This document shows positions 17,109 through 56,340 of a stretch of 64,000 nucleotides of DNA, piece by piece (position 1 is the stretch's first letter; every line of letters begins with the position of its first letter). The stretch is from Paramoeba atlantica (Eukaryota; Protista; Discosea): assembly GCA_977017575.1 (NCBI GenBank), contig CDRNVI010000083.1, positions 310,001-374,000 on the forward strand, in the 5' to 3' direction. The notes beneath the pieces were generated by a model that worked only from the letters and a program-made list of their open reading frames with translations, ran no database searches and had not been told where the DNA came from. The translations under genes were made by a program, and so were the position numbers.

Positions 17109-20100
17109 TTGTTGACTTTTTTTTATTATCTCTCTCACGGATTATGCAGCAGCGAGTGCTTGTCATCCACAGTGGAACTGTGCAGGATAATGACTCAGTC
17201 GTCACCTTCGGTTCGGCGAAAGAGCAGGTGTGTGATACGGAACAAAAATCTGTTTCGCAACCGCGCACGCGAAGAGGTGGACCCATCACAGTACAAACTT
17301 TGGACGACATTGGTTTTGGAAAACGTAAGAAAAAGCATCGCCGGCCAGTGTGGCGTCCGCTCGACCTTGATCCAACTAAAGAGGGAAATTCCACCAGTTC
17401 TGACAGTGAGAAACGTGAAATGCCACGCAAAGTGTCCAGGAGCCGCGTTCCGGATTCGCCGCAACCCAAAAGCTTGGGAAAAGCAGAGAAGCCGAGTGCG
17501 AAAACGAAAAGCCAAAATAAAGGGCAAAAAGGCGAGATTATGGGGAAGGAGGGCGTGCAAAAGAAGGATCAACACTCATTCGAGAGCAAGAGTCTACAAA
17601 GTCCACCTCCCCCAGTAAATATACAAGACAACTGGACGAAACAAGGACGGGACGTTTCCAAACAAGAAAACAATGAAATATCCGAATCCAAGCACCAGAC
17701 GCCCTCGACTGTGAAGGGACACAATCCACGAGAACGTGCGCCAGTTGAACACCTTGTACCTCAAGAACGCGATTCAGACATAGAGGCCGATGCTGAGTAC
17801 TGTGACTCGTCGGAAGATAACGAAAATGCAGGAAACTCGCCCATAGCTCCCGACCATGTTCTTCGGAAAATCTCGGATTGGGGTAAAGGAACGACGTGTG
17901 CAGTACGGTGGTGTTTTCGAAACTCTCAGAATCGAATCTACGAATCGATTGGTGAAGTTGTTTCCAGAAAACTGCGAAAGAAAGCGTTGAACATCAAAAT
18001 TTCGTACCATCCAGCCCCTGACGAAGCCGGGCCCTCTGGAAATCTTTATCTTCCCCAGTCGACGAAAATCAAGGTTTTCGGCATCCGAGCAACTCATCTA
18101 CGCCGTGTTCCAGATTGTGAAGTTTCAACGACGATATGCGCGGCAGAAGATGCGGACGACACAGATCACGGGTGTGACCTAGAGCCTTTGCCTTCTTTCT
18201 CCCAGATCGATCCGACGTTTTTTGTGCATGTGGTAGCTATTTTCCGTTCGATCATAAGAGACTATCCGAGACTTAAACTATCCTCAGAAAAAGATGCATT
18301 ATGGCAAAAATTCCTCAACGCCCCACGAGACTCACTAGTAAGCGTGCGGAAAGCTATCCAAAGACTGGAAAGCATCCCGCATAGCCATAAGAGCGCCAAT
18401 GCCAAGGAAAATGTATTTTTATCCAAAGAGGAGGTAAAGGAGCTCAAAGTTGACCGCCGCTCAATACGCAACGCTCTCCATGCAGCTCGTGCAGGAAATT
18501 TAAGTAAAGCAACCAGAGTCCTGGACAACGTTTATGTAGACTCCCAACTCAGCGTGGACGAAATAGTGCGAAAATTGAAAGACCTTCATCCCACAGGTGA
18601 TCCACCACCTGCGTCATCAGTAGAATACCCACGGGCTGGCGTAATCGAGATGGACGAGGTTCGCTCAGCGGTAAACAAACTCGCGCATGGAGCAGCCCCA
18701 GGCCCGACGGGATTGAGCGAAAACATCCTCCGCTTACTGGCTGATGGCGTGGTATGTTGTTCAGGTTTGTGCCACATGATTAGAGATGTCATCAACGGAG
18801 AAATAAGCACATCAGTTCGCAACCGTCTGACACGTTGTAGAATCATCGCCTTAGCAAAGCCGAATAACGGGGTAAGACCGATAGCGATGGGTGACACAAT
18901 GCTCAAAATAAGTGGCTCAATCCTGCTGCAACGTCATGAAGACTCGTTGAAAAGGTTCTTCCACCCTATGCAACGTGGTGTCTTAGAAAAAAATGCATGT
19001 GAAGGAATCGTTCACGAGCTTCTTGATGACTACAGCAACGGACACACTATTCTTTCGGTAGATAACACCAACGCATATAACACTGCACAGCGCTCAGCAA
19101 TTGCTCAATCCCTGCAGGCGCACAAAAGTTTCAAGCCGTTTATGCGCATGTTTTATTGCGAATACGGAAATCCCTCGGACCTGCTCTTCTTTGCCAACAA
19201 TCGACTACATTCTATACTTCAGAGCACTTCCGGAGTGCGGCAAGGCTCAGCTCTTTCCTCTCTGTACTTTTGTTCACTAATACAAGGTGCGTTGGTGGAA
19301 GTCTCTGATCTTTTTCCAGAAGTGAAAATTAGAGCATACATGGATGACGTTACATTGTCCTCAAAAAATCGCATCTCACTGGAAGCCGCGTTCTTACATC
19401 TCAGAGAGCTATCCACTGACCTTGGCATGCACATAAATTATTCAAAATCAGAATGGTTCAACGCTGAGAGCAGTAAGAATCGGAACAGTCATCCTGATGC
19501 TCTTCGCTCCCTAGGCGTCACCCATTCTGACAAGACAATCAAAATCCTTGGAGCCTACATCGGGGATCACCAAGAGGTCAGCTCACTTCTGGTCAAAAAA
19601 CTAAAGAAGCACCAATGCCTGTTCCGTAGGCTTCGTCGAATGGGGCCCAGCAACATTTCACTGGCTGTACTGCAACGCTGTGCGCTCCCACGTCATGATT
19701 ATCACCTGCGTGTACACCGTCCAGAAGACTCGCTTTTTATGGCCCAAAAATTTGATGAACAAGTTAATGATATTGTGTCGCACTGGTTCTTTGCTGATCC
19801 TATCTCTATCAAGCTATCGTCACTTCCACAACACCTAGGAGGACTTGGTTTGACACCGTCAACATTAAAACATCGTTTCTTTTTCGACACCGCGCGCAAA
19901 TCGATTGATGAGCGAACACTATCCAATAAAGCTCCGGTAGTTTTGCGCAAATCGAAAGGAGGCATTCCCGATGATAATGGAAGCTCAAGCCGTACAGCCA
20001 AGCATCAGACAGCCAGAATTCAAGCATCAAAAGCTATGAAGACGGAACAAAAACTATTAGCCACCGAGTTACGTAAGGATAGCAGAATAGACTCCATACT

Positions 20101-21075
20101 AAAACGCACAACGACTGCCTTTCGACATCTTCCTTCAACTAGCGGATACGTTAATCCTTACCTTTTCAGATACGCTATCATGTTTAGATTAGGCATCAAA
20201 CCGCCTTCGTTGCCGGATCAAGTGAGTTGCCCTGGATGCGCTGCTCAGATAAAATCAGAGGAAATCCTTCACCACATTGTGGGTTGTACAAAGTGTTCTG
20301 GAATGAACGCTACACGAAAACACTCATCTCTAGTGCGCTTTCTAGCCGAACTTTGCTCAAAAGCAGGCCTCCAGTCCGTCATAGAACCTCGCACTTATTC
20401 ATCCTTCTATTGTACCAAGTGCAAGGCACACGTCTCCGCTGATGCGATTGATAACCATCCGTGCCGCGCACGAAGAATAAGGTCAGGCCCCGACCTCGGA
20501 ATTATGTGGCCCCATATGGGTGAAGTACTTTACGACCTCACAGTTGTCCACACCGGTAGCCCAAGCTATCGAAAAATGACAGAAGCTCAGCTCCTGCAAA
20601 ATGCTATTGAGAGAAAGCAGAAGAAATACGTTGAGAAGGGGGGGATTGATGAAGACTTTTTTCGCTGCATCTCCATGACAGAAGGCGGTTTCTTACACAG
20701 CCATATGAAAAATCTCCTTTCCTGTCTAGCAAAGAAAGCCGAACTTAAAATCCCTGAAGTACTAGAAGCTTTTCAACTTGAGATTGAAAAGCTTAATGCA
20801 TATACAATAGTTGCGTAACTGCGCGATTATCTACCCCGAGCATCGTGGCTGGGTTCACTGCAATCGTAAAGAATCCGTAAAGATTACGAATTGGTTACGA
20901 ATTTTCATTAACTGAAAGAAGAAATGATGTTTTATTTTATTATATTAAAGTTTAAACGTATGCGTCTGGCATACTCCAAATTCCTACAAATGCACCACAA
21001 ATATTTCCATTTACAATCGTTCACGAGCTCTCCCCGTCTAACGTATCCAGATCCGGAAAAAAAACAACTAGAAAA
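17109..21075 (+). mobile_element. Element A: near full-length RLE-type non-LTR retrotransposon inserted in S1
   Basis: Flanked by S1 on both sides. Short T-rich 5' UTR, single long ORF and ~200-nt 3' UTR ending in an A-rich stretch. Confidence 0.92.
17144..20869 (+). CDS. RT-RLE polyprotein of element A (1224 aa to a premature TAA at 20816; homologous end at 20869)
   Basis: RT motifs RPIAMGD, VDNTNAYN, SGVRQGSALS, AYMDD, LGGLGL. CCHC knuckle CPGC..HIVGC. RLE motifs RKH, GPDL, YDLTVVH, RKQKKY. The 16 codons after the TAA (LRDYLPRASWLGSLQS) match the C-termini of C and H. Confidence 0.9.
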
Positions 21076-21167
21076 TAACAAAAGAAAGGGTCTTAACAAA
21101 AGAAAGTTAAGACCCTTTCTTTTGTTAAGCCCCTTTCTTTTGTTAAGACCCTTTCTTTTGTTAAGAC
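21076..21167. repeat. Short S1 tract with an internal strand inversion (22-bp perfect inverted repeat, 8-nt loop)
   Basis: 21076-21097 TAACAAAAGAAAGGGTCTTAAC is the reverse complement of 21106-21127. Confidence 0.95.
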
Positions 21168-21749
21168 TATAAGTATACGTTTAGAAATTTAGGATGATTG
21201 ATATAATGGCCCTTCGGGGCACATAATATTTATATTATGAGATATGTAGAAGTTCACGGAAGGAAATTTAGGAGGGGCTTTATAGTGATGAAAATTGGCC
21301 GACGGGCATTGTACGTTTTATTTATGAATAGTTTCTATAGTGATACATGGAAATAAATATTTTATATATTTTGATAGTAGTCTTCAAGTTTTGCTAAGTA
21401 CTACGAGTTACCCACCCACCGGCCCCCGCCATTTGGCGGCGGAACCGGACGGAAAACCCGTTCACTTAGTATCATCTACAAACAATATAGTTTTTGATTT
21501 TCTCATGATATTTCTAAACAAGCGCTTATTTTTCATAGTTTGATTCGAAGGAAGAATGTACGAAATTGTATATTTCATAGTACGGTTTTCACATCTACAA
21601 GAATTTAAGTAGGTTCTTATTTCAGATTTTAGAAGTTGTATTTCAATGAAGTAGGTGCCCCGACGTGAATTTCATTTGTTTGTTTTGTTTAGAGATTTCA
21701 TTTATTTAGTTTGGTATAGTGACACTCCTTCTCTAACCTTTTTATTGCG
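21168..21749 (+). repeat. Left terminal repeat A1 (segments 21168-21246 and 21674-21749 recur in A2)
   Basis: TATAAGTATACG...GAGATATG and ATTTGTTTG...TTGCG match 29771-29849 and 29850-29925. Confidence 0.9.
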
Positions 21750-21832
21750 AATGTTTTTATTGCGAATTAGAGATTTCATTTATTTAGTTTGGTATAGTGA
21801 CACTCCTTCTCTAACCTTTTTATTGCGAATGT
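21689..21832 (+). repeat. 66-bp direct duplication (21689-21754 / 21767-21832) ending at the probable gag ATG
   Basis: Two identical copies read directly; translates as RDFIYLVWYSDTPSLTFLLRM twice. Confidence 0.9.
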
Positions 21833-22882
21833 CTGGCATTTTGAATACTGTTCGCCGTACGTTGTCAATGGGGAGGCAACAGAGTCCTGTTCGAGAAGAT
21901 CCTTCTTCCCCTAATCCGGTTGACCCAAGTTTGCAGTATGGGGAGCAACGTACCACGCTTAACCCGGAGCAAGTGGCGGCTTTGCTTCGGGGGGGAACAG
22001 GTTCGGAGGCAATGTCGGGGGAAGCTAAGGCGGAATTCGCACAGAAGGTTCAGACTTTGATTGCAAAAGGTTACGACGTGTCGGTAGAGGCGGTTTGGGG
22101 CCATCAAGGCGATGCAGTGCGCGAAACTGTCACTGGGAATGTACGCTTGAAATCGGACGGGTCAGGTACCATGGAAGCTGTGTGGACTGACGATCCCGGA
22201 ATGGCGTACGACTTCCCTTTTCCGGACATCGAGTACTACTCCTTAGAAATTGTTCGAGTACGTGCTAAGATGCCTGGTGGCCGAAAGGCGGACGAGGAAC
22301 CTAAGACTCCTAATGCACCCATTACTGACCCGGCCCGATTCACCGCGAACGACCCCCTCACGTGGGGACCATGGCTGGAGTCCGAGGATGAGCTCCGCGT
22401 CCGGGATCTCATACGTGATTTGCGGGCCCATCCCGAGTTTGGCCTCTTGCTGAATGCACCTCCAATTCGTGAACGGCTGTTTAAAACAGTACAGGAGTGG
22501 ATCCAGGCAGCCCGAATCTATCCTTTCTGGCGCGAAGAACATTTCATGGAAATCGTACGTACGGCAATTGAAGAACTTCGGAATAATTATTGGGCCTAAT
22601 CTGGAATTCAGGTAGAGCGCGTTCAGTTAAAACTGCACATGACGAATTGACTTTCATGACGAAACGAAGGACGCGTACTCCAAGGCAGTTGCAGAAGAAA
22701 AGCTATGGAACATGACGGTATCTAAACAATCGACGAATCGCCCGGCCTTTCTCTGCTACCGCTGCCACAAACCAGGTCATTTCCGAGCGAACTGCCCGTT
22801 AAATCAATCGTCTACTCGCTTGACCCCGGGTTTTCGCGGAGGGGTGACGAGCGGCACTTCGAGTGCAAAGAGGAGTCACTAG
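21829..22882 (+). pseudogene. gag: gag-like ORF with a CX2CX4HX4C zinc knuckle, broken by a stop (22597) and a frameshift (~22640)
   Basis: The frame from ATG 21829 closes at 22599. A second frame 22643-22882 encodes CYRCHKPGHFRANC at 22754-22795. Confidence 0.75.
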
Positions 22883-22885
22883 GTA

Positions 22886-24034
22886 GTGCTCCCCACCCCT
22901 TACATCGCTCGTGCCTGTCCGCTGAAAAAGCGGCGGGTGATTTGTCCAGGTCTATCATTCAGCTCATATTTGCACTCTGCAGGGAAGGTGCATGCCTTTG
23001 TGGCATGTCACGGAACGGGACTGCAGAAGCCACAGCATCGGGTGGCGGAAGTAAGGACGTACTCAAGGGCGGGTCAGGCCAAACGATCTCTAGCAGTATA
23101 TCCCGCCGGAAACAAAATCAGGAAACTGGACGTGCAGTCTGCCCAGGACAAGCTCACATGCACAATTTTGAATCTACCAAGTACGAGCCCGCTAGCACAC
23201 CAAATGAGAACCGCGATAAATCCCATGTGGACGAATGCTACTTGGCTCTCAAGGGCACGACTGTGGGGAAGGCTCGAACTTTTTTGTCGGGAAAGAGGGG
23301 TACCACCAGATCCAATACACGCCGTTTTGTTCCTTCAGCAAATGGATCTGGCACCCGCGCCACTGTTGAGCTACACTCGCAATCTTCAAACCGTATTTCA
23401 GCTGAGTCAAACCGATCCTACCCCTCTCAAAATGTTTGCAAAAGCTCTACAGGCAAGAGGCGCTCTCGAACCAACGCGTCAGATGGAGCCAATCACTCCG
23501 TGGCAACTACGCCGGCTAAGGACAAAATTATCGTTAAGCGAAGGGATCGCCGCGTTGATCTGTTGGAAGGCCGCAGCCAGATGGACAGAAGTCGCAGAAC
23601 TAACCCTCGAAAGATTCGTGCGAAATCAACCGAACGAAGTCATAGTCTATTGGGGACGGAACAACAAATCGACTCGTCTCAACCCGTACCGCTTATCGAT
23701 GTGCACAGCCATACAAGGGGAAGGAACTCTAGAGATTGCGGAATACGTCCGGTTTATGAGGAAGGGTCAGCAGGTGACAAGCACAACGGTTCGGGAAATG
23801 GACGTGAAAATGAAGAAAATTCTGGGCCCCGGCTACGGGACACACTCCCTGAAGCGGGGCGCGATAACGTATCTCTTCAACGAGGTGGCGCTCGGACGCG
23901 TCGCTCTCTCAGACGTGCAAAACATAGCCAAACATCAATGCATCAACTCCCTATTACGATACAACGGGAACCTGATAACAACGGCAAAGGCGCTCGGTAC
24001 GCAGCGAGCTTCGGTTCTCCTACCAACCCTATAA
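22886..24034 (+). CDS. Tyrosine recombinase (probable start at a downstream Met)
   Basis: Catalytic signature R (AARW), HxxR (HSLKRGA), H (AKHQ), Y (LLRY). Confidence 0.88.
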   Translation: MLPTPYIARACPLKKRRVICPGLSFSSYLHSAGKVHAFVACHGTGLQKPQHRVAEVRTYSRAGQAKRSLAVYPAGNKIRKLDVQSAQDKLTCTILNLPSTSPLAHQMRTAINPMWTNATWLSRARLWGRLELFCRERGVPPDPIHAVLFLQQMDLAPAPLLSYTRNLQTVFQLSQTDPTPLKMFAKALQARGALEPTRQMEPITPWQLRRLRTKLSLSEGIAALICWKAAARWTEVAELTLERFVRNQPNEVIVYWGRNNKSTRLNPYRLSMCTAIQGEGTLEIAEYVRFMRKGQQVTSTTVREMDVKMKKILGPGYGTHSLKRGAITYLFNEVALGRVALSDVQNIAKHQCINSLLRYNGNLITTAKALGTQRASVLLPTL

Positions 24035-25042
24035 CTCAAGAGGATGTCAACCTTTGTTTCGATCAAATACCGCACGTTAGGCGATACAGTGTTATTTGCG
24101 CGCGGCGCACTTCCCGTCTTGCACGTCCCGAAGACATGAACCTCCCCCTACACGTTAAGGCTGGAATACCCGTAATGGACGTGCAGAAAGTGAAGACTTG
24201 GATGTCCCCTGGTGCGCTTCACCGCCTGGAAACCGTGATGAGACACTTATTTGACACGCGACTTGCAGCGCAGACCGAACCAGCAATCAAAGGTAATCTT
24301 TCGGAAGCTGATGTCGTTGGTTTGCTTGACGCTGGAGTGATTGAAACAGTCGAACAGAAAGAACTCCATCAGCATCCGACTTTACAATAGTAATATTCCT
24401 TTTACCGTAGTTGAATCCGATGAGGAGGGGAACGCCCGGCGCCGATTCATATCCTGGACCAAGGACGACAATATCAGATTAAAGGACTATAAGCCCGACG
24501 TTTCTTTATTGCACCCTTCTTGGTATCTGCATAAGGCTGAGGAAGAAGCAGGCGTTAAGCGCGACTTACGTTGCGGGTTCTACCAAATCGGAGTTCCGCG
24601 CGCGGCACGTGCCAAATTTCGTTTTCGTGACCAAGATGGAGTCTTGCACCAGATGAAAGTTATGCCCATGGGGCACCGATGCGCCCCGGAAATTATGCAC
24701 AAACTGACAGCAGCTATCGCGTGCGACTCTGCTGTATGCAAGCCCACACTGGGCTCCTGTATTGGCTCCGTGGATATTTACATAGACGGTATTCGATTTG
24801 CCGGAACCCGTGAAGAATGCATCAAATTTGTTAAATTTGTTGACGGACGGTGTGCTCAAGTCGGTGGCTTATTTAAGGAGACCGGATCCGACCCTTCCAA
24901 GGAATATGTGTTCAACGGAGTCCTGTACAATCATGAAACCCACAAGGTCAGCCTGGGACCTAGGGTTTTACAAAAAATGTCGCGCGATCGCTATCTTAAC
25001 ATAACGTTTTCTCAACTGGAGACGGCGGTGGGGCGCCTCTTT
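22942..25042 (+). pseudogene. pol: pol of the YR element: long N-terminal frame overlapping the YR gene, RT split by a frameshift at ~24385 and truncated by element F
   Basis: LLDAGVIE (frame 1) continues as PFTVVE..RRRFI, DLRCGFYQ, MPMGHRCAP, YIDG, QLETAVGRLF (frame 2). Confidence 0.8.
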
Positions 25043-28000
25043 CCGAGGTACGGGTTACTATCAATGTCTGGTATCAGCCCACACGAAGAGACACTTCCCC
25101 TCATGGACGACGATACATTCCTACAAGAGGAATCCATACATCTACCTGGATCTTGGGACCAATTTGCTGGAAACGCACACCTCATCAAGCATCCAAGCAC
25201 GTATAATGATCTGCTATATACAACTCCGATTCCTGCGAATGTCCCTAATGACTGGTGCGCGAATGCCGCCTCCATCTTAACTCAACAACAAACGCCTGAT
25301 ACAGGATGCGAAAATGGAGGCGACGAAGAAACGAACCACTCACGTGTTCTCATCAGATCGAATCTCGAAGTTGATACCACACAGCTTGATAATAATTCCA
25401 TGGCTAAGAAATTCCCTCGTCGAAGAGCTTCCGCCACACCTCCGAGTTCTAAGGGTCAGCTTCGGGGCGCTACGAAACCTCAGAAGGCCCGAGAGAAAGC
25501 CAATACAAGAAAAGCGGAAACCGCGGACTACAAGACCACGCGGGGCCCCCACGTTCTCGAACCTACGGAAAACTTATCACGAGTGACCACTCCTCAGGCC
25601 CCGACCCTGGCAAGTGACCAGGTTCCTGCGACCCCGCCCATTTCTGAGGAAGATCCGCCGCAACGAGAGCGCCCTGCAGATGGGTGTACCTGGAAGACGC
25701 AAGCCCACGGAGGGCAGTGGCAGTACTATTGCCACCACGTGGCCTACAGGCATGGGGAAGCAATTTCCAGTGTTTGGTGGGAGAAAGAGGGCCGCTTTCT
25801 GTGCGCCGCATGCGGTCGACATTACGCTCTCAACAAAAAGACGGCGCACGTGAACCAATGCAAAGGGCACGCCGTGCAATCACCTCCACCCTCGCAACCC
25901 TCGGAATGCCTAGGAGAAGCCATCTACGATGTTCAGGGCACGGCCGAGCTACCCTCTCTGGAGCAAATATGCACGACACCGATAAACACCTGCAAAGACG
26001 TCCCACACCGATGCCGACGCATGTGGGCTCAGATATTGACTTACGCCCTATCCATAGCGGTGCGCGAAAATTCAGTGAGGGCGTGGACGCTCCTTGCCTT
26101 ACTTCCAAAGTGCGTCCTTCCAGCCCCGTTCCGAGGAGGCCGCAAAGCCCATATCACTTACTCGTCGTACATTCTCAAAAGAGTGGAGCTTTGGATGGAA
26201 GGACAATACTCGACCCTTTGGTCTCAAGCTGTATCCGATCACGAGAGAAAACGCCCGAAGAACACGAGCAACGAGAACGACGTGGAAAAGGCTATAGTAC
26301 GAGCAGAACTTCTGGTCCGTGACGGGGAATTTTCCAGAGGAATGGCAGCCCTGACGGCAGCTCCCCTCGCACCGCACAACGAAGAAACATTGCGAAAGTT
26401 GCAAAGGAAACATCCTAGCTCCCACGGGAATCCTATCTCCTGCCCTTTGCCACCATTGAAAGAAGACTTTTTACAGCTGGACGAATCGGAAGTAAAAAAG
26501 GCCGTGAATAGTTTTCACCGCGGCTCCTCCGCCGGAACCATGGGTCTTCGACCCGAACACCTACAAGCAGCACTGCAAGAGCATGTTGACCAGAACATGG
26601 ATCCACTCCTGGCGCTCACGTCCTTTGTGAACCACCTTTTAGCAGGCAGAGGCCCGGATGAAGTACACCCCTTCTTTGCAGGTGCACGACTCTGCGCGCT
26701 CGAAAAGGACGAAGAAGACGTGAGGCCTATTGCTGCGGGGGAAACGCTACGACGTTTGGTCAGCAAGGCAGCGTGTCTTTCTTTAAAGGAAAAGGCAAGT
26801 TCCTTCTTCGGCCGCAAACAGTACGGCGTCGCGGCGCCCGCCGGAGCAGAGCGAGTCATTCACAATTGTCGTAGGTTGATGCTCAACAACATGGAAAACG
26901 AAAATATAACCTTCTGTAAAGTGGATCTCCGCAACGCCTTTAACAATGTCAGTAGGCCGGTGTTTATCTTCCTCACGCGAAAGCATTTCCCCGAGTTGTC
27001 CCCATGGGTTGAGTGGTGTTACGCCAACCACAGCTGTCTAACATTTGGTGACGATTTAATTCCTTCGGCCGAGGGCGTGCAGCAAGGTGATCCCCTAGGT
27101 CCCCTCCTGTTCTCTTTGGTTTTGTCGGGGGCAACGGAGGAAATCGCATCGCGTACAAAGCTCCAAACACAGTTATGGTATCTCGATGATGGTGTGATCA
27201 TTGGCGAACCACAGGAAGTCCGGAAGGCACTAGACGTTCTCTCGGAAGTGGGAACTCAGTGGGGACTCTTTCTGAACCTCTCAAAATGTGAAATCATCAC
27301 CCCGCCTGCGTCTGCCCACACCTCTTCCTTTTTCCCCGACATTCCTAGCGACAAAATAAGGTATGACGGAAACTTTGATATCCTTGGGAGTCCGGTGGGC
27401 TCTCCAGAACACTGTGCGAATTTCCTAAGGACACACGCGATCGAGCCAGCCCGCGACACGTTGGAAGCCATCTCCTTGATAGAAGACCCGCAAGTGGCCC
27501 TCGCCCTTATAAGGCAGTGCGCCGGATTCTGCCAAATGGTATACGCACTGCGTACCACCCCTCCCCAAGGCCTCGGAGAACTCTGTCGTCAGCTGGATTT
27601 TCACCTCATGCGCGCTGTGGAACACGCACTTTTTCCTCTTGATCTTCCCGCCCTTGACCAACTACAACGGCCCAAACGTTACGGGGGATTCGGCCTTCGC
27701 TCATCGTCGCTTTACCACTCGGCCGCATACGTTTCTTCTGTGGCTTTTGCCTCCGACAAGGATAAGTGGGATGCAGCCGAAGCTGAGGGGTTTCTTGATT
27801 CGGCACGCGAAATAAATCAAAAAGTTGGGACTGTCCTGATCGATCTGTATACTGGACGTATCCTCAAGCCAAGCTCACCAGACTACCCCAACGAGGCATG
27901 GGACGCCCAGTCACGCCCGGCGAAAAGAAAACTTTCCCATTCCCTCCGCCACCCCCTTTTACCCGACATCACAGAACCAGAAACCATCGTACCACGACAA

Positions 28001-29400: not shown

Positions 29401-29429
29401 CAGATGCGCTCAGTGACTTGGTCAAATAA
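29401..29429 (+). pseudogene. Probable RNase H C-terminal remnant of the YR element
   Basis: Directly after the poly(A): (GC)A GAT GCG CTC AGT GAC TTG GTC AAA TAA = (A)DALSDLVK*, resembling the ADxLS motif that ends retroelement RNase H. Confidence 0.5.
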
Positions 29430-29523
29430 GCAATAGCGGGGCTATACATGTAGGTGTTTCAGTAGGTGGCCGCCACCATTAACACATGCGCTCGGGTGGT
29501 AGTATTACGTGCGAGCGGGCTGG

Positions 29524-45200: not shown

Positions 45201-45675
45201 GCAGGAAAGCGCCTTAGCATAAGTAAGCGAAGTGTCAGTTGACGAAAGCTTTTCCACCCTTTGCATTTGTTTTAAGATAGGCGAGGGGTTATCGGATCTT
45301 AGCGACGTGTTAGCCCTCACCCGCGCTCTCCGGGATAACGTGTGCATGCTGGTACGTGGAGGTGGTGGCGAAAAGGGATGCGCAGGCGGCGGTGGCGGAC
45401 ATGTTCTCATTTTACACCGTACGGATGCTGACGTTGATGGTGGTGATGGCGTCGTCGGCGGTGGCGGCCGTGGTGGTGATTGTTCGGGTGATTGTTCGAG
45501 CGGCGGGGGTGGTGACGGTGGTGGTTGTGGGGTGGGCTTCTCTTTCTTCTTCCGGCGTGTGGGGGGAGGCGACTGGACAATGGGAGCTACCCCGGCATCC
45601 TTCGCCTTGGCACGCGTCAGCATGCCCATTTTCGGAAAAAGAGTAGGAAAAAAAAACAACAAGGTACAGAAGGTT
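42205..45675 (-). mobile_element. Element B copy 4
   Basis: Near-identical; a few SNPs. Confidence 0.93.
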
Positions 45676-46708
45676 GTTAAGACCCTTTCTTTTGTTAAGA
45701 CCCCTTCTATTGTTAAGACCCTTTCTTTTGTTAAGACCCTTTCTTTTGTTAAGACCCTTTCTTTTGTTAACACCCTTTCTTTTGTTAAGACCCTTTCTTT
45801 TGTTAAGACCCTTTCTTTTGTTAACACCCTTTCTTTTGTTAAGACCCTTTCTTTTGTTAAGACCCTTTCTTTTGTTAAGACCCTTTCTTTTGTTAAGACC
45901 CTTTCTTTTGTTAAGACCCTTTCTTTTGTTAAGACCCTTTCTTTTGTTAAGACCCTTTCTTTTGTTAAGACCCTTTCTTTTGTTAAGACCCTTTCTTTTG
46001 TTAAGACCCTTTCTTTTGTTAAGACCCTTTCCTTTGTTAAGACCCTTTCTTTTGTTAAGACCTTTTCTTTTTTTAAGACCCTTTCTTTTTTTAAGACCCT
46101 TTCTTTTGTTAAGACCCTTTCTTTTGTTAAGACCCTTTCTTTTGTTAAGACCCTTTCTTTTGTTAAGACCCTTTCTTTTGTTAAGACCCTTTCTTTTGTT
46201 AAGACCCTTTCTTTTGTGAAGACCCTTTCTTTTGTTAAGACCCTTTCTTTTGTTAAGACCCTTTCTTTTGTTAAGACCCTTTCTTTTGTTAAGACCCTTT
46301 CTTTTGTTAAGACCCTTTCTTTTGTTAAGACCCTTTCTTTTGTTAAGACCCTTTCTTTTGTTAAGACCCTTTCTTTTGTTAAGACCCTTTCTTTTGTTAA
46401 GACCCTTTCTTTTGTTAAGACCCTTTCTTTTGTTAAGACCCTTTCTTTTGTTAAGACCCTTTCTTTTGTTAAGACCCTTTCTTTTGTTAAGACCCTTTCT
46501 TTTGTTAAGACCCTTTCTTTTGTTAAGACCCTTTCTTTTGTTAAGACCCTTTCTTTTGTTAAGACCCTTTCTTTTGTTAAGACCCTTTCTTTTGTTAAGA
46601 CCCTTTCTTTTGTTAAGACCCTTTCTTTTGTTAAGACCCTTTCTTTTGTTAAGACCCTTTCTTTTGTTAAGACCCTTTCTTTTGTTAAGACCCTTTCTTT
46701 TGTTAAGA
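45676..46708. repeat. S1 spacer, 1033 bp
   Basis: 57 units plus 7 nt. Confidence 0.97.
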
Positions 46709-49700
46709 GGGCACTAATCTGGTGGAGGAGGCCAGCGACGTGTAACTTCCTTTAGCACTTGTAGCTCGTAATATGTCGGCTTGGCGTGGTTCTTCCATCA
46801 ATTTGTCGCGTATGTATTTGTGGTGCAGGTCTTCTGTTGTTGGTTCATCGGCGGAAGGGTTATTATGATTTGGCTGAGTAGTTAGCTGTGTGGCCAAACC
46901 CGTGCAAGGGGCGGGAGCTGAAAGATATATTGGTCGCTCCGTTGCCATTTGCTTGGATTTAGTATACGCTGCTTCCCTAATTGGTTCGGAAGGAGTGATA
47001 CCTAACCCGCCTTTCTTAAGAGGAAGCCGTGTCCATGAGATTTGTTTTTCTGTTAGTCCGCCAAACCATGAGGAAAGAGTGTTGGAAACTTCTCCGTCAA
47101 ATTGTCTCGTGAGCTCCGATGTATTTTCCGGATGATGTACGCGGATATGATATCGGTGGCGTACATTAATGCACTTGGAAAGCAAAAGAACAGAAACATT
47201 GTTTGCCCCCATTTGCTGAAGACGTCGGAATGCTGTACGGTGTTTTTGAAGCATCTGAACGAGTTTTTCGCTGACCAGATGACTGTCGCCCACGAATGCT
47301 CCTAGAACCTTTGTGGCGCCTGGCTCCCAGTTTACACCTTCCTGCATTAACTGATGCGGCAAAGGGATATGATTGATTCCCCCGAACCAAATACATTTAC
47401 TGGAGGAAGTCTCTACGCGTTTCGACGTCAACAGTTCCTTAAGCCGTAAGAATGCATTGGATACCATTTCTGCGTCAGTCGATGCAAAATTGATGTCATC
47501 AACGAATGCATAAATACGTAGCGTGGGAAATTCGGACGCGATTGTTTCCAAGATTGGTTGAAGAAAAGCGCAGAACAAGATAGTGGATAAGGGGGACCCT
47601 TGGCGCACGCCAGCAGCGCTCATTACAGTGTTGCAAAGTCGGCCATCTTTTCCATAGTAAAGCAGCTCGGATGGAGACCCGTACTCCGCATTGAAGAGAC
47701 GTAAGAATGGACGTAGGCTGTGGAATCCAAAGACTGCTCTGGCAATCTCGTCCCGTGATGGGGAGTTGAAGGCGTTCTTAAGGTCAATCGATAAGATGGC
47801 GCATCCTTCCGCGTAGCGTTCATCAAGTTCATGCACAACTTTTTCGCAGCCGGATTTAATCATCACTCCGAACTGATGTGGCGAAAACAGAGGGGGTAAT
47901 GTTTTCTCGTGGCGCTGTAGTAATACAATTTCGGCGATTTTGAGCCACACCTCACCGACGGCAATCGGTCGAATTCCTTGCGCTGTTTTCGGAATTGCGA
48001 CGAGTCGCGCTCTTTTAAGACGCTTCATTACTTCTTCAGGCAGTACCCCGTTGATCAGGTCTGTGAACATATGAGTTAAGCTCAAACAGCAAACCTCATC
48101 GTCCAGGAGAATACGTAGTATCGAGTCCGTCGTACCCGTAGGCCCCGGTGAAGCACCTTTCGCGAGTCGTCTGCCAGCCTCTCTCAGCTCGCTGGGGGTA
48201 ATGCATGCGGTGATAGGGGCGTCTTGTGGCAATCGGAAACTCGTTGGGAGATTCGGGTGGAGTGCTATGAGTTTTTCCACGATTTCTTCGTCGCTTTGTG
48301 ATTTCGCCGTAATTTCTCGGTCCATAATTTGCGAAGCTTTCGAGACACACCCGTCGAGGACCAGGCTTGTCGCCTTTTTAATAGCGCGTTTATCGTTCGC
48401 GTCAGCGTTCGGTACAGTTCCTTCTGATCTTTGTAATTCATGATTCTCTTGCGATGATTCTTGATCGTCATGTGAGTCCAATGGACGGCGACGGCGGCGC
48501 TTCACCGTAACTTTTCGAATAGTTGCCAGAGAGTATTTCATGGCAGAGAGAACTCTATGCCAGATGCGGTAGCGGTGTGGATAAGAACTATCGGCATATT
48601 CCCGCATTATGTCGCGATAAATCGCAACGACGCAAGGAATATATTCTGGAGACACTGTGCGTAATGTCGGCATCGGTTCGCGATCGAGATCGTCCTCAGT
48701 ATGTTGTCGGCGCGAGTACGTTTTACTCGGTTCGCTATTCTGTTGTACGCGCGGTTCCCACAACAGTCGAAAGATGCGAACGTTGGAATGAGGGGGAATA
48801 TGCCCATCAAACACCTCACCAATATTGTGTCCAATGATGCCTTCGTAACTTAACGCTAGTTTTCGAACGTTTCGCACTTTCCGAGATGTTTTAACAGTGC
48901 CACTCGATACGTTTAGGATGGGCGTGCAGTCAAAGCTCCATGCTACCAGGCACCGATCCCCTGGCTTCGCGTTGTGAGACAATCTGGATACTTCGTCCGG
49001 GGGAATGGGAAAGTGAACAGCAGGATCAATTTCTTGACACATGGAGTTGGCAAGAATTGTCAACGACTCACTCGAAGATAGTGCCAGCGTCTTTGCTGAA
49101 GCAGTGTCGTCAGCGTTTCCTTCGCAGTCGAAAAATTGTTCTGGTTCTTCACTGTCGTTATGGTTATTGTTTTCCGACGGCGGGTTCTCGTGGTGTCCTT
49201 CCTCTTCTGCATCTATCTGCTAATTCCTCTATCTGCTAAAACTGGTGCGTTTACCGTCGCTTTCTTGCCGCGTCGACAAAAAAGGTTCGAAAACAGGTCC
49301 TTCGAAAACAATTTCGCGGGTATTTTAACCGTTGCTTTGTTCGCTGGAGTTGGCGGGGGGAGCGGTGGAGGGAGAAGTGGGGTATGCGGCTGGGGGGTAT
49401 GAGACTCAGTTGTGATACGCGACTCGATGACTTCCTCCGGAAGAGGCGACGTGTTACACGGCTCAGAAATTCTATGCGACTCGATGTCCTGTGCAGAGGG
49501 GAGTTTCGCTAGCCTTTCTTGGCGTAAAGCTTCGTGAAATTCCCAGCGAGCTTGTTTGCGCTCTTTTCTTTGGAGGTAGAATTCTTCGTCAGAAAGAATC
49601 CGAGCTGACGGATTTAGCGGCCGCAGAACTATATCATTGATCGGTACCTCTGCGTCTTCTTCTCTAACGGCACCGGCTCTGTGTGGCGATCTGGGGGCGG

Positions 49701-50179
49701 GGGAGCAGGAAAGCGCCTTAGCATAAGTAAGCGAAGTGTCAGTTGACGAAAGCTTTTCCACCCTTTGCATTTGTTTTAAGATAGGCGAGGGGTTATCGGA
49801 TCTTAGCGACGTGTTAGCCCTCACCCGCGCTCTCCGGGATAACGTGTGCATGCTGGTACGTGGAGGTGGTGGCGAAAAGGGATGCGCAGGCGGCGGTGGC
49901 GGACATGTTCTCATTTTACACCGTACGGATGCTGACGTTGATGGTGGTGATGGCGTCGTCGGCGGTGGCGGCCGTGGTGGTGATTGTTCGGGTGATTGTT
50001 CGAGCGGCGGGGGTGGTGACGGTGGTGGTTGTGGGGTGGGCTTCTCTTTCTTCTTCCGGCGTGTGGGGGGAAGCGACTGGACAATGGGAGCTACCCCGGC
50101 ATCCTTCGCCTTGGCACGCGTCAGCATGCCCATTTTCGGAAAAAGAGTAGGAAAAAAAAACAACAAGGTACAGAAGGTT
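46709..50179 (-). mobile_element. Element B copy 5
   Basis: Near-identical; followed by only 24 nt of S1 (50180-50203). Confidence 0.93.
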
Positions 50180-50463
50180 GTTAAGACCCTTTCTTTTGTT
50201 AAGCATAATGTTTGCCCTCCTGAATTTCAAATCGTAAACTTATAGAAATACAATCACTATTTTACACAAGTTTACATATTATAAAGGAACCTAATATTCT
50301 GATCTGCGTATTAGGAGGAAGAGGAGGATGGGAGTAGCTCGGCTAGCGCATCGTCTTTGGCTAGGAAAGAGCAAGCAACTAGGCGGAAGAAGCAAAGTGA
50401 AAGAAGAAGCAAAGTGAGAGAAGACTGGGGGAGGGAGAGTATTCGAACACACTTAGTGACCTT

Positions 50464-53184
50464 CTAGAAGCGAAGTCCACCTATCCAGTTATCCTTCGGA
50501 ATGTACTCACGTAGTTGAGATACCACCGTGTATGCGGACATCTTTTCAATCTCAAGTTGAAATCCCTGTCGTACATTGTCGTAGTTCATTTTTGCGCGCT
50601 GCGCTATTGCCTTTAAAAGTGCCTTGGTGTCATTGTGTAGAAGGCCACAGTCTGAGGTGGCCAGACAACGGAAGTATTCACTATCGACACCCTTTTCGGA
50701 GACATATTTCTTGATTTTTCGATCGATCGCTTGTTGTATGAGTGCTGAACTGGTCTGTTTCGCGTAACTGTTGCAACAGGTGTGCACCACCGTGAAGTCA
50801 TAGAGCACTTCCCCCATGTGTGGCCACATGATGGCGAGATCAGGTCCCGAGCGGATACGGCGTGCTTTACATGGATGCTGTTCGGCTACGTCGGCGGCGA
50901 TGGAGCATTTACATTTGGTGCAGTAATATGAGGAGTGAATGCGCGGTTCAGTGACGTTCGGAAGACCTGCTTTGGAACATAACTCTGATAGGTAGCGGAC
51001 GATGTGGGAATGTTTGCGTGTGCAGTTCATACCAGAGCAACGAGAGCAGCCTGCAACATGTGGAATGATGCTGGATGGGGATTCTTGGGTGCAGCATCCA
51101 GGGCATGTGACTTTGGCAGGAGCTTGGGGTAAACTGATTCCTAACCGCATCATGAGTGTGTATCGAAATAAATAAGGATTGATATAATTGCTCGTGCTTT
51201 CGAGATGCAAGTTGTTCTCCATAGTGCGTTTCATTACAAGCTCCAATTGCGAATTCTTCCGTAGCTCGTAAGCCTTCTTTTCGTGTTCTTCTTTCATCTT
51301 CTTTTTCAGCAGCTTCTGGGCGACTTCACTACGACTTTGTCCGTTGGCGTGTACTTTATCTCCACCTTTTATACCTACTGGAGCGTTATTGGGTTTTGGG
51401 TGCTCAACAATAGATTTCCGGGCAGTTTCAAAGTAGTATTTCTGCTTCAAAGTCGAGGAGATCAATCCTAGGCCGCCTAGTTTCTGAGGAAGTACCGCTA
51501 GTTGCAAGGCTTGTGTGTCAGCTCCGCACCATTTCTTAAGAACTTGTTGAACGTGGTCTTCGAAGGCTTCGGCTAGCCGCGTGGTTGCTTCCGGACGATG
51601 AACTCGCAGATGATAATCTTGTCGCGGAATTGTGCATCGACGTAGAATTGCGAGGGACAGATTGCTTGGACCCATTAGCAGGAGTCGACGGAAGAGGCAT
51701 TTGTGTTTTTCCATCTTCCGTAGAAGAAGATCTTTTATCACCTCATTTGCTCCTATGTACGCTCCCAATATTTTAAGCGCATCATTCCGGGAGTTAACAC
51801 CTAAGCGGTTCAGGGACAATAGTTCGTCATCAAATGTAGTATTCTTTTGGAACCATTCACATTTCTGAAACTTGACATGCAGGTTAAGATCACTGGTAAG
51901 TTCGCGCAAGTGCAAGAACGCTGCCCCAAGTGACAACACGTTTTTCGAGCTTAGGGTCACGTCATCCTGGTATGCTCTGATCGTTACGTCGGGATATAGG
52001 CTGGCTACTTCTCGTATTGGGCTTTGTAGAAGGGCACAGAAGTACATGGAGGATAGAGCTGAACCTTGGCGGATTCCGGAAGAACTTTCCAAGACGGCGT
52101 AGAGGGCATTATGCGCGAAGAAGAGGAGCTCCGAAGGTAGCCCATACTCAAAGTAGAACAGGCGCAGGAAAGGTTTGAATATGGGATTGCTTACCAGTAT
52201 TTGTGCAATGGCATCGCGTCGCGGGGTATTATACGCATTGCTGAAATCTACCGTAAGCAACGCATGTCCGTCCTCGTATTCTTGAAGCAATTCGTGGACG
52301 ATGGATTCGCAGGCATTTTTGTGTAGGACTCCTCGTTGAATTGGCGCAAAGAATGTCTTCAAGGTGGTTTCATGTCGCTGCAGTAGAATAGATCCACAGA
52401 TTTTCAAAATAGTGTCTCCCATGGCAACTGGACATATCCCGTTCTGCGGCTTTGGTAGGGCGATGATTCTGCAGCGAGTAAGGCGCTTCCGGACGCTTAG
52501 TGGAACTTCTCCGTTGATTACATCTCGAACCATGTGGCACAGTGAAAGGCATGATACATCATCGTCTACAAGCAACCGCATCATACTCTCACTTAGCCCG
52601 CTTGGTCCGGGGGAAGCTCCACGAGCCAATTTCTCAACTGCCAGACGAAGTTCCGAACTTTCAACAACTCCGATGCGTGGGAAGTCAGCTTCCGGTATTT
52701 GGATAGGGGGTCCATCAGGATGCAATTCTCGTAGTTTCTGAAATTTTTCTTCGGCCGAAAGAGTGGAGTCCTTGTAAACGTTATCTAGAATTCGAGTGGC
52801 TTTCCCCAGATTCCCTGCTTTGGCTGTTCGCAACGCGTTTCGGATCGCGCGCCTGTCGATTTCTAGTTCGGCTCGTTGTTCTGCACTTAGATTTATGCCA
52901 TCTGATAGCTCGTTACGTTCCTTTCGCACGTGTCCCACTCTTTGGGTTCTTCTAATTGCATCCCGCACTGTAGCAAGTGAGTCTCGCGGCGCATTCATAA
53001 ATTTGTGCCAGATCGCTGCTTTCTCAGAATCAAGTTCAACAGTGGCATAGCCTCGGATAATCGCACGGAAGATTGCTACCACATGCACCGCGAAGGATGG
53101 CTCGATGTTGGGAAGGTCCGGGAGGGGGTCGAGATCGCAGCCACTGTCGTCAGACGAGACATTTTCTGATTCGAAATCCACACC
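50464..53184 (-). CDS. RT-RLE portion of element C
   Basis: DFSNAYN, SGIRQGSALS, AYQDD, CPGC..HVAGC, GPDL, YDFTVVH, RKIKKY. The conserved RP motif is changed to CP. Clearly homologous to A and H. Confidence 0.9.
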   Translation of the reverse strand, partial: GVDFESENVSSDDSGCDLDPLPDLPNIEPSFAVHVVAIFRAIIRGYATVELDSEKAAIWHKFMNAPRDSLATVRDAIRRTQRVGHVRKERNELSDGINLSAEQRAELEIDRRAIRNALRTAKAGNLGKATRILDNVYKDSTLSAEEKFQKLRELHPDGPPIQIPEADFPRIGVVESSELRLAVEKLARGASPGPSGLSESMMRLLVDDDVSCLSLCHMVRDVINGEVPLSVRKRLTRCRIIALPKPQNGICPVAMGDTILKICGSILLQRHETTLKTFFAPIQRGVLHKNACESIVHELLQEYEDGHALLTVDFSNAYNTPRRDAIAQILVSNPIFKPFLRLFYFEYGLPSELLFFAHNALYAVLESSSGIRQGSALSSMYFCALLQSPIREVASLYPDVTIRAYQDDVTLSSKNVLSLGAAFLHLRELTSDLNLHVKFQKCEWFQKNTTFDDELLSLNRLGVNSRNDALKILGAYIGANEVIKDLLLRKMEKHKCLFRRLLLMGPSNLSLAILRRCTIPRQDYHLRVHRPEATTRLAEAFEDHVQQVLKKWCGADTQALQLAVLPQKLGGLGLISSTLKQKYYFETARKSIVEHPKPNNAPVGIKGGDKVHANGQSRSEVAQKLLKKKMKEEHEKKAYELRKNSQLELVMKRTMENNLHLESTSNYINPYLFRYTLMMRLGISLPQAPAKVTCPGCCTQESPSSIIPHVAGCSRCSGMNCTRKHSHIVRYLSELCSKAGLPNVTEPRIHSSYYCTKCKCSIAADVAEQHPCKARRIRSGPDLAIMWPHMGEVLYDFTVVHTCCNSYAKQTSSALIQQAIDRKIKKYVSEKGVDSEYFRCLATSDCGLLHNDTKALLKAIAQRAKMNYDNVRQGFQLEIEKMSAYTVVSQLREYIPKDNWIGGLRF

Positions 53185-53460
53185 GAGGGGCCGCACAGGA
53201 CATAAAAGAAAATAACTATAAAGATGAAATAATAATTTGCACCCGCCAAACCCGGCGGCTATAGGATGGGGGTTTGGTGGGTGGGACAAAAAACGCGTAA
53301 AGGAAAAAGATTCTACAAGTAAGTAATCAGTAAATATGTAAATTTTCAGAATACATATTGTAGCTTTTATACATGATTCAATTACAACCCCCTTTCGGGG
53401 AAAAGAAACAATGAAAATTATAACCCCCTTCCGGGGCATTTGACCCGATATTAGCCCCTC
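53185..53460. mobile_element. 276-bp MITE-like insertion with short TIRs (GAGGGGC/GCCCCTC)
   Basis: Removing it joins GNLT to GVDFESEN in one frame of element C. AT-rich interior with two CCCCG(G/A)AAGGGGG hairpins. Confidence 0.75.
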
Positions 53461-54361
53461 GGTTAAATTTCCATGCGTAGACTTCTACTCCTCCAGGTTC
53501 TGGATCGCCGTCTCCACTTGAAGAAGTTTCGTCGCCCGAAGACTGTAGATTTTAATTTTGTCCGACTGTGGAAGGTATAAGACGCCGGCGTTGGAAGGCC
53601 CCGCGTGGACACCCGTTCGAGAAAGGGAGGGAAGGGAGTTCTCTCCAGGAAAAAGTTCATGAGGTATATAAAATAGGTTTGATACTTACTTCGCGAAGTT
53701 GATATTACAGTACTGGTGAAGATAATGTCTTTTACTCTGTTGTCCATGATGGATGTTATATTTCGGTAGCTCTGTAGTTCTACAGATTAAACATTACAGT
53801 TTACATACGCTTACTATATCTGATTGACTATATGTTTTTCTTCCGGAAGTGCAATTCAGTGCCTTTCCCCCATTTCGCCACAGTGTTGTGAACTTGATCT
53901 GCTGCTTTTGTGCTGTTGTTTCGCATCGCCATTTCTCCCTGATCAGCGTCGGAATCACTGTCTAGCGTCATTTGAACACGCTCACTTTCGATGTCACTCT
54001 CTTGCCCGTTTTCAGCTGTTGGAAACGCAAATTGTGTATTGATTTCGCGTGCGTTTCCAGAGTTTTCTTGGTTCGAGACTATTTTGAATTTTTGCGGAGT
54101 AATTTTGATGATGTTCTTTACCGGGGTGATGGTGGGTGTTCCGTGATCGACCCAGTTCTTCGATAAAGGTTCGGCTCCAATGACTCGGATGCGTGGTGTT
54201 TTCTTCGGCTTTTCCGTGGTAGAATTCTTAATTACTGCATCGCTTTTTACGATCTTTTCTTTGCTGTTCGTGTCTTGCGTCCGTATTTTTACAGTTACAC
54301 GACCAGATTTCACATTCATGCTCTTCGGTGTGTTGGCGGATCCCCGAGCAGGGCGCGTCAT
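53461..54361 (-). pseudogene. N-terminal region of element C with stops and frameshifts
   Basis: KWGKG and GPSNAGVLYLPQSDKIKIY match DWGKG and GPSGNLYLPQSTKIKVF of A. TAG at 53485-53487. Confidence 0.75.
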
Positions 54362-54412
54362 AGTGATTAAATCGATATAAAAAAAAATCAACCAACAAGG
54401 TACAGAAAGTTT

Positions 54413-55923
54413 GTTAAGACCCTTTCTTTTGTTAAGACCCTTTCTTTTGTTAAGACCCTTTCTTTTGTTAAGACCCTTTCTTTTGTTAAGACCCTTTCTT
54501 TTGTTAAGACCCTGTCTTTTGTTAAGACCCTTTCTTTTGTTAACACCCTTTCTTTTGTTAACACCCTTTCTTTTGTTAACACCCTTTCTTTTGTTAAGAC
54601 CCTTTCTTTTGTTAAGACCCTTTCTTTTGTTAAGACCCTTTCTTTTGTTAAGACCCTTTCTTTTGTTAAGACCCTTTCTTTTGTTAAGACCCTTTCTTTT
54701 GTTAACACCCTTTCTTTTGTTAACACCCTTTCTTTTGTTAAGACCCTTTCTTTTGTTAAGACCCTTTCTTTTGTTAAGACCCTTTCTTTTGTTAAGACCT
54801 TTTCTTTTGTTAAGACCCTTTCTTTTGTTAAGACCCTTTCTTTTGTTAAGACCCTTTCTTTTGTTAAGACCCTTTCTTTTGTTAAGACCCTTTCTTTTGT
54901 TAAGACCCTTTCTTTTGTTAAGACCCTTTCTTTTGTTAAGACCCTTTCTTTTGTTAAGACCCTTTCTTTTGTTAAGACCCTTTCTTTTGTTAACACCCTT
55001 TCTTTTGTTAACACCCTTTCTTTTGTTAAGACCCTTTCTTTTGTTAACACCCTTTCTTTTGTTAACACCCTTTCTTTTGTTAAGACCCTTTCTTTTGTTA
55101 AGCCCCTTTCTTTTGTTAAGCCCCTTTCTTTTGTTAAGCCCCTTTCTTTTGTTAAGCCCCTTTCTTTTGTTAAGCCCCTTTCTTTTGTTAAGCCCCTTTC
55201 TTTTGTTAAGCCCCTTTCTTTTGTTAAGCCCCTTTCTTTTGTTAAGCCCCTTTCTTTTGTTAAGCCCCTTTCCTTTGTTAAGCCCCTTTCTTTTGTTAAG
55301 CCCCTTTCTTTTGTTAAGACCCTTTCTTTTGTTAAGACCCTTTCTTTTGTTAAGACCCTTTCTTTTGTTAAGACCCTTTCTTTTGTTAAGACCCTTTCTT
55401 TTGTTAAGACCTTTTCTTTTGTTCAGACCCTTTCTTTTGTTAACACCCTTTCTTTTGTTAAGACCCTTTCTTTTGTTAAGACCTTTTCTTTTGTTAAGAC
55501 CCTTTCTTTTGTTAAGACCCTTTCTTTTGTTAAGACCCTTTCTTTTGTTATGACCCTTTCTTTTGTTATGACCCTTTCTTTTGTTAAGACCCTTTCTTTT
55601 GTTAAGACCCTTTCTTTTGTTAAGACCCTTTCTTTTGTTAAGACCCTTTCTTTTGTTAAGACCCTTTCTTTTGTTAAGACCCTTTCTTTTGTTAAGACCC
55701 TTTCTTTTGTTAAGACCCTTTCTTTTGTTAAGACCCTTTCTTTTGTTAAGACCCTTTCTTTTGTTATGACCCTTTCTTTTGTTAAGACCCTTTCTTTTGT
55801 TAAGACCCTTTCTTTTGTTAAGACCCTTTCTTTTGTTAAGACCCTTTCTTTTGTTAAGACCCTTTCTTTTGTTAAGACCCTTTCTTTTGTTAAGACCCTT
55901 TCTTTTGTTAAGACCCTTTCTTT
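54413..55923. repeat. S1 array, ~84 units, with clustered variant units
   Basis: Run of consecutive GTTAAGCCCC units at ~55100-55310; GTTAACACCC and GTTATGACCC clusters. Confidence 0.98.
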
Positions 55924-55926
55924 ACC

Positions 55927-56340
55927 CTTTCTGTACCTTGTTGTTTTCTTACTCTTACAATTATGTCCACCGCCCACGGCAACACTCTCCCAGGGGTGAA
56001 CTTTTCACACGCTGATCGGAAGAATAGCTTACAATCCAATCCCAAGAAGATTCCGCGAATCAGAATAGTGACGAGTGAGAAGGAACTTTCGAAATCATGG
56101 GCAGACCATGGAGCGTACGACTTTCCACCTCGAGAACGAATCAAGGCCAGAGCACGCGATGATGCCGAAATATATTTGTCTCCAATAGATTGTCCGTCGA
56201 ATGTAAGCTCAGATGCCGATTCACGAGACAGCCTTGACAGCGATACCTCAGATACGATGTCCACGGACGGTGACCAGCTAGCAACTGTGTCTTGTTCTAG
56301 ATCAGCTCCGACTTTGTCGTTAAATGAAAAAAAGGAACAA
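55927..56340 (+). pseudogene. Element E 5' fragment (leader plus N-terminal ORF 55963-56355)
   Basis: CTTTCTGTACCTTGTTG leader; PKKIPRIRIV..ELSKSWADHG matches PKKTPRIRVI..PLSKNWVDHG of C. Confidence 0.75.

Follow-up and report, generated by a model that had tools for sequence, protein, structure and literature searches.

Spliced leaders (SLs) and retrotransposons are associated with each other in several described systems. The trypanosomatid retrotransposons SLACS, CRE1, CRE2 and CZAR, which lack long terminal repeats (non-LTR elements), sit inside SL RNA genes, where they split the exon at nucleotides (nt) 11/12 and are flanked by both gene halves. In dinoflagellates, relict SLs are tags of retroposed genes (Slamovits and Keeling 2008; PMC5585692, PMC12014239), while MoTeR, FoTeR and Cnl1 are fungal, telomere-repeat-targeting members of the same clade of elements with a restriction-like endonuclease (RLE; PMC12857005), and in Perkinsela sp. 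SL RNA gene fragments adjoin retrotransposons and an L1Tc-like mRNA carries the SL (PMC5601477). Here we analysed a 64,000-nt stretch of the Paramoeba atlantica assembly GCA_977017575.1 (contig CDRNVI010000083.1, positions 310,001 to 374,000; hereafter the window), in which retrotransposons A, B1–B5, C and E lie in arrays of an 18-bp unit (CCTTTCTTTTGTTAAGAC) and begin with the 3' end of the host SL exon. What is new in this system is that euglenozoan RLE retrotransposons start with the exact host SL exon, that SL relics are graded in length and also stacked on one another, and that the truncated forms occur in 18-bp arrays. We consider it likely, with a probability of roughly 0.72, that the elements were reverse transcribed from trans-spliced, SL-carrying RNA.

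As in dinoflagellates, retroposed units carry a DNA copy of the host SL at their 5' end, and 5'-truncated and stacked relics record repeated cycles of trans-splicing and reverse transcription. The dinoflagellate units are host genes, however, whereas those described here, from a euglenozoan whose 38-nt SL is of the kinetoplastid type, are autonomous retrotransposons that encode a reverse transcriptase (RT), together with their short derivatives. Moreover, ...CTG rather than AG precedes the start of the recurrent stacked relic (nt 29), and relics that start after the internal AG (nt 23) are seen only without a fresh SL upstream. With SLACS, CRE1, CRE2 and CZAR the elements have in common the non-LTR type, an RT with C-terminal CCHC and PD-(D/E)XK RLE motifs, euglenozoan hosts and an association with the SL, but here the 3' end of the exon, to its last base, precedes the element, no SL or intron sequence comes after it, and the elements are inserted in 18-bp arrays or form chains linked by poly(A). 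The likeness to MoTeR, FoTeR and Cnl1 consists in RLE elements within tandem terminal-type repeats, repeat units at element ends and head-to-tail arrays; unlike in the fungal case, the 18-mer is not shown to be a telomere, both element orientations occur, and the 5' end carries a host SL, which fungi cannot provide. The Perkinsela fragments are 100–360-bp pieces of SL RNA genes beside elements of the ingi/L1Tc type, which have an apurinic/apyrimidinic endonuclease (APE), in contrast to the exon alone, exactly adjoining the untranslated region (UTR) of RLE-type elements, in the present case. The Pr77 motif of ingi/L1Tc differs likewise, being a 5' sequence that APE-type elements encode themselves and that has no host gene as its source, whereas the motif here is the SL exon end and an RLE is present. 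SL-tagged retroposition has so far been documented mainly for dinoflagellate host genes, and the euglenozoan relatives of the present elements are known for the opposite relation, insertion into SL genes. The SL is a built-in tag of mature RNA, and its presence, truncation and stacking would be a direct genomic record of movement via trans-spliced RNA; the relics also record how element 5' junctions form, and the SL-headed elements are linked with unusual 18-bp terminal-type arrays.

The shared motif of the window is the 15-mer TTCTGTACCTTGTTG, which has seven exact matches, each at an element 5' end (minus strand, ending at 33872, 37800, 41725, 45671, 50175 and 54407; plus strand, 55929–55943). 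The chance expectation was 0.27 for a search tolerating up to two mismatches, and none of 100 shuffles reached seven. Its 8-mer core TTCTGTAC has no further occurrence in the window beyond the element 5' ends, and the ATG of an element open reading frame (ORF) lies 22–35 nt downstream of every copy of the 15-mer. The remnant is 16 nt long (TTTCTG...) in C and E and 15 nt in B. A first-pass annotation of this DNA had reported this common sequence of B1–B5, C and E and had added that A retains TTGTTG alone; both statements hold, and the 6-nt remnant of A (17109–17114) is a true SL remnant, because the UTR of A starts where that of a relative with a longer SL remnant does (L002 9974). As the junctions of B1–B5 are identical and the variant repeat units upstream of them are identical too, these five copies represent one event, tandemly amplified with a unit of ~3.9 kb; the independent cases with 15–16 nt are three (B, C and E), plus A. 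The annotation had also stated that similarity ends right after TTG, which does not hold for every pair, B and E having a T-run and then C(C/T)TACTCTT in common. It had described the 5' regions of the elements as unrelated; the difference is confined to the ORF1/N-terminal parts, with B distinct from C and E, and to call the elements as such unrelated would be an overstatement, as their RT ORFs are 35–56% identical and point to one clade. Comparison with published SLs bears out the 14/16 match that it gave to the Leishmania-type end.

The motif corresponds to nt 23/24–38 of the 38-nt host SL, AACTTTAACGATAAAGATACAGTTTCTGTACCTTGTTG, which aligns over its full length with published 39-nt euglenozoan SLs (30–33 of 38 nt identical). 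Scanning JGI metagenomes, we recovered one contig from a microbial mat (L003) with an identical 38-nt exon followed by the intron GTATGAGAAGCTTCGAAC; the exon ends in CTGTACCTTGTTG, and the GT intron begins with GTATGAGAAGC, which we take to be the intron start of kinetoplastid SL RNAs. The gene for 5S rRNA (98 bits) is located 0.4 kb from the SL exon, and linkage of SL RNA and 5S rRNA genes is typical of several euglenozoans. An Rfam search of the contig found the 5S rRNA alone and matched no SL RNA family. L003 thus carries the SL RNA gene of a relative of the host, not of the host itself, and such relatives are environmentally widespread, since sampled words of the contig also occur in sediment, cold-seep and seawater metagenomes. 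The host's own gene was sought by comparing the host DNA runs X1–X3 and an RNA run with the same species label (X5) with positions 1–440 of L003. Each of the three DNA runs contained one contig with SL nt 12–38 and 18 intron nt without mismatches, diverging from L003 thereafter, at depths of 58, 432 and 1545 in comparison to 2–100 for other contigs (~20-fold deeper); this contig is the multicopy SL RNA gene of the host. In a further 90–168 contigs of each run the match stops precisely at the last exon base and gives way to T-rich sequence that differs between contigs; these are SL-headed retrocopies. The first-pass annotation had proposed that the shared bases are the 3' end of the host SL and that SL RNA genes be searched for the motif; the search was positive, with the motif at the exon end before a GT intron both in the relative and in the host DNA runs. 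The outcome that the annotation had named as a refutation, with the motif missing from SL RNA genes, is therefore not what the data show. For a poorly known protist lineage that is detectable in marine and sediment metagenomes, the leader and a portion of its RNA gene are now available. Two high-depth contigs of the RNA run have the SL followed by T-rich sequence, without link to A, B, C or E. One further RNA contig joins the reverse complement of SL nt 18–38 to the SL start and is probably a snap-back cDNA artefact at the SL inverted repeat. Literature searches on the motif, the 18-mer and the 5' half of the SL yielded no relevant paper.

Relatives of A (53–55% identical) and an identical copy of B ORF2 (100%, contig ctg3669c) with the same B junction were located in the ENA assembly ERZ24900291, of which ~160 kb were read. 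Because B ORF2 and the B junction are identical there, this assembly derives from the same organism. In its contigs the motif is the 3' end of the full 38-nt SL, which heads many elements: 11 independent element 5' ends begin at SL nt 1–7, and several of these start directly after poly(A) runs of 12–22 A that belong to an upstream element (L001 8702–8725; also in L002, L007 and L009). The L009 copies match the exon of the relative's SL RNA gene at 38 of 38 positions. Approximately 30 remnants all end with TTGTTG at the last base of the exon and then pass into differing UTRs; nt 3–38 of the SL are invariant in six of seven long copies, and the next 30 nt average 49% pairwise identity. At five loci the relics are stacked: behind an SL, full or partial, come the 10-nt relic TACCTTGTTG (nt 29–38) and then the UTR (L009 7481–7528; L007 22229–22273, minus strand; L007 7400–7456; L002 18930–18975, minus strand; L006 15825–15843). 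This 10-nt relic begins after ...CTG and not after AG, which, by analogy with what is reported for Perkinsela, hints at the use of a non-AG acceptor. Several SL copies have ATCT... in place of the AACT... of the SL gene and of the L009 copies, the T at nt 2 being either a polymorphism or a misreading near the cap. Inspection of the flanks of the L001 copy revealed no clear target-site duplications, the loci L006 and L008 added little, and exact-protein look-ups of B ORF1 (with two start choices) and of the A ORF retrieved no record from a collection in which the window's contig is represented solely by the B ORF2 sequence on ctg3669c. L002 was also considered as a continuation of the window and rejected, as there is no 18-bp array at the expected place.

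Under the favoured reading, RNAs of the A, B, C and E clade would carry the SL at their 5' end, most likely through ordinary trans-splicing, and reverse transcription of the mature, SL-carrying RNA would copy the SL into each new DNA copy. The boundary would then fall exactly at the last exon base because the mature RNA is copied together with its SL. Full-length copies elsewhere would keep the SL from nt 1–7 onward, and the copies of the window, within 18-bp arrays, would have lost the 5' two-thirds of it when the 5' junction was formed. We infer both the arrival of the SL by trans-splicing in each generation and the manner of its truncation. Of the three hypotheses put forward in the first-pass annotation, reverse transcription of trans-spliced mRNA is the best supported; we favour it because of the exon-exact boundary, the chains in which full SLs succeed poly(A) tails, the invariance of the SL beside divergent UTRs, and the stacked relics, which are expected from repeated cycles of splicing and retroposition. 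Several points weigh against it. No transcripts of A, B, C or E were seen in the one RNA run, X5, which contains almost none of the sampled words of 53400–56400 (the C/E region), and the predicted master copy, with an acceptor site where the SL would otherwise stand, was not found. B has no AG between SL and ATG at which a DNA copy might regain exactly one SL. In B and C the junctions (G-strand repeats, C or CC, relic) lie off any microhomology, and the 16-nt relic also occurs twice outside arrays (L002 9958, L007 17427), so that the array is not the whole reason for truncation at nt 23. Finally, it is in a relative that the SL RNA gene is complete; the host runs contain only 5–8% of the sampled words of that contig (L003), and the host gene is known solely from the 45-nt contig match.

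An alternative source of SL-headed RNA is the SL RNA promoter itself: master copies residing in SL RNA genes at the exon–intron boundary would be transcribed from this promoter, the RNA would start with the capped SL without trans-splicing, and dispersed copies would inherit the SL. Such an arrangement would be in accordance with an RLE of the SLACS/CRE pattern, from a clade that targets SL genes in trypanosomatids, with the missing acceptor site downstream of the SL in B and with an SL/UTR boundary that is fixed within families. We nevertheless regard it as unlikely, because none of the elements in ~220 kb of host DNA read is followed by the SL intron, and because stacked relics, in which a fresh SL is joined inside an older one, need splicing onto an existing transcript. 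Neither the window nor any of the host loci contains the intron start GTATGAGAAGC, and no element there is succeeded by an intron; the window likewise lacks the 5' half of the SL, and no SL sequence is present 3' of any window element. The same pattern leaves the second hypothesis of the annotation, a relic of targeting of the SLACS/CRE type, unsupported: it does not fit because SL gene halves would be expected on both sides and flank no element, the SL being confined to the 5' side and complete to the last exon base.

It appears quite improbable that the ancestor of the clade acquired the SL only once, as a DNA segment whose 3' part was then kept by selection as a promoter, initiator or translation signal. 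All families do fall into one clade, truncated 15–16-nt forms occur on intact-looking ORFs (B and C), and relict SLs of dinoflagellates have been proposed as promoter motifs (PMC5585692). Inheritance of this kind is at odds, however, with the identity of the whole 38 nt to the SL gene exon across RTs that are 35–56% identical and beside a UTR at 49%, with a remnant length of 0–38 nt that varies even within the B family, and with the stacking of relics. That the signature belongs to the elements themselves or arose by convergence and has nothing to do with the SL, the annotation's analogy to Pr77 of ingi/L1Tc, would explain why the motif is found at element 5' ends but has practically no probability left and is refuted, given that the motif is identical to the last 15–16 nt of the SL RNA gene exon and that sister copies carry the full 38-nt SL.

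The start positions of the relics have a bimodal distribution. Counting A and one B variant, which were read by eye, independent SL starts in the window and the host loci number 11 at nt 1–7, none at nt 8–22 and at least 15 at nt 23–33; the hot window of truncation therefore begins right after the internal ...ACAG of the SL. Two 5-mers only are common to the SL and the repeat unit, TTTCT (nt 23–27) and TTGTT (nt 33–37). The junction of E lies exactly on the former and that of A exactly on the latter, both in plus-oriented copies with a C-strand array upstream, which indicates that microhomology guided the cDNA when it was joined to the target upstream. This does not explain B and C, which have G-strand repeats upstream and one or two extra C before the relic. 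The SL can fold into a hairpin with its loop at nt 23–25 (−6 kcal/mol, z −1.4); a strong hairpin as the cause of truncation is unsupported by this energy alone, and a small hairpin together with use of internal acceptors are possible contributors. Two other candidates were rejected. Re-splicing at the internal AG (nt 21–22) finds no support in the host loci examined, none of which has a fresh SL on a 16-nt relic, the stacked relic being the 10-nt one. Telomerase healing as the sole cause conflicts with the wrong polarity of the repeats at the B and C junctions, the opposite polarity of a second repeat array (S2, described below) and the 16-nt relics outside arrays.

Domain searches identified an RVT_1 reverse transcriptase in A, B, C and two fragments, R56 (56467–58032, minus strand) and R62 (62592–63899, minus strand). 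Identity between the RT ORFs amounts to 56% for A with C and to 35–38% for B with either of them. All except the 3'-truncated B have a C-terminal module of the form CCHC ... KH ... E ... GPD-x13-D ... K, in which C-x2-C-x11-H-x3-C, KH, E, GPD-x13-D and K are invariant in A, C, R56, R62 and the proteins P0001 and P0003. The module agrees with the RLE pattern quoted for SLACS/CRE and MoTeR, CCHC ... (R/K)H(D/N) ... E ... (R/K)PD ... D/E (PMC12857005), except that the spacings differ and a second Cys/His cluster is situated between E and PD. Domain search found no Exo_endo_phos domain in the elements, the RLE being present instead. Nearest atlas clusters of the RT include Euglenozoa, and matches in the PDB are to generic LINE RTs only. 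Judging from these sequence features, A, B, C and E appear to constitute one clade of RLE-type non-LTR retrotransposons with divergent 5' modules.

The first 17,108 nt of the window are an array of ~950 copies of the 18-bp unit (C-strand on the plus strand; 96% matches in Tandem Repeats Finder), which has a strong strand skew, adjoins the 5' end of A and is a possible terminal repeat. The elements are separated by shorter arrays with this unit in an unchanged polarity, and the arrays contain variant blocks, for example GCCC for GACC at ~55100–55300 in the inner array. Element A (17109–21106, plus strand) starts with the TTGTTG remnant, has a single ORF (17144–20818) encoding the RT and the C-terminal RLE, and terminates in 1.7 G-strand repeat units (21076–21106), after which the C-strand array resumes; at 21106/21107 the strand flips within a short palindromic junction around TTAA (21076–21167). 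B1 (30406–33874, minus strand) has a CC filler and the 15-nt remnant at 33858–33872, followed by ORF1 (32910–33830) and the RT-encoding ORF2 (30400–32760); the latter is broken off at its 3' end inside the RT, where it passes into the array, and so has no RLE. B2–B5 (34334–50177, minus strand; 5' ends at 37800, 41725, 45671 and 50175) are tandem copies of the B1 unit with 25–57 repeat units between them. Element C (50204–54409, minus strand) has a single C as filler, the 16-nt remnant at 54393–54408, ORF1 (53828–54361) and an ORF2 with RT and RLE (50464–53439); its 3' end joins 1.4 G-strand repeat units directly, without poly(A), whereas in L001 a relative of C, whose 3' UTR is homologous, terminates in poly(A). 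C and E lie head-to-head, and an array of 84 units (54410–55927, plus strand) separates their 5' ends; the last of these units is irregular (...CTTT/ACCC). Element E (55928–56361, plus strand) is a short derivative of ~430 bp with the 16-nt remnant at 55928–55943, a 130-aa ORF related to C ORF1 and a tail that ends in one G-strand unit. Thus A and E carry 1–1.7 G-strand units at their 3' ends despite lying in C-strand arrays, and the 3' junctions suggest either target-primed insertion into arrays or template jumping onto repeat-tailed RNAs.

These features can be combined into a wider proposal, which we hold to be doubtful. The RLE clade would propagate via SL-capped RNA, recycling the host leader in each generation, and would at the same time build and extend the long 18-bp arrays, by template jumping or by telomerase-like reiterative copying of 18-nt 3' tails; the arrays may cap chromosome ends. 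The junctions between truncated SLs and arrays would be footprints of this process, and the window of starts at nt 23–33 would reflect the SL hairpin or internal acceptor sites.

The B unit also occurs in contig ctg3669c (L004/L005, 27.5 kb), which is labelled circular by the assembler and consists of B units and 18-mer arrays only. It has three junctions between array and B 5' end (at SL nt 24, at SL nt 33 and without SL) and one partial 5' duplication; either it is a circle outside the chromosomes, or a tandem array may have been misassembled into this form. In the window, a 9-kb element with three ORFs (21168–30195) interrupts the array between A and B1; its 1505-aa RT ORF is 24–25% identical to RLE-type RTs. 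R56, which has no 5' end, consists of the RT C-terminus and the RLE of another member of the family, and R62 is a C-terminal RT/RLE fragment that is 62% identical to C. The second 18-bp repeat, ATAAACAAAAAGGGGGTA (S2), forms an array of 49 copies at 60050–60926 that is purine-rich on the plus strand, opposite to the main arrays, and another 1.5 units are found at 62050–62087. A further 18-bp unit that is similar to the main one, ATTAAGACCACTTTTTGT, is present in 4.2 copies after the poly(A) of an A-like element (L002 13800–13882).

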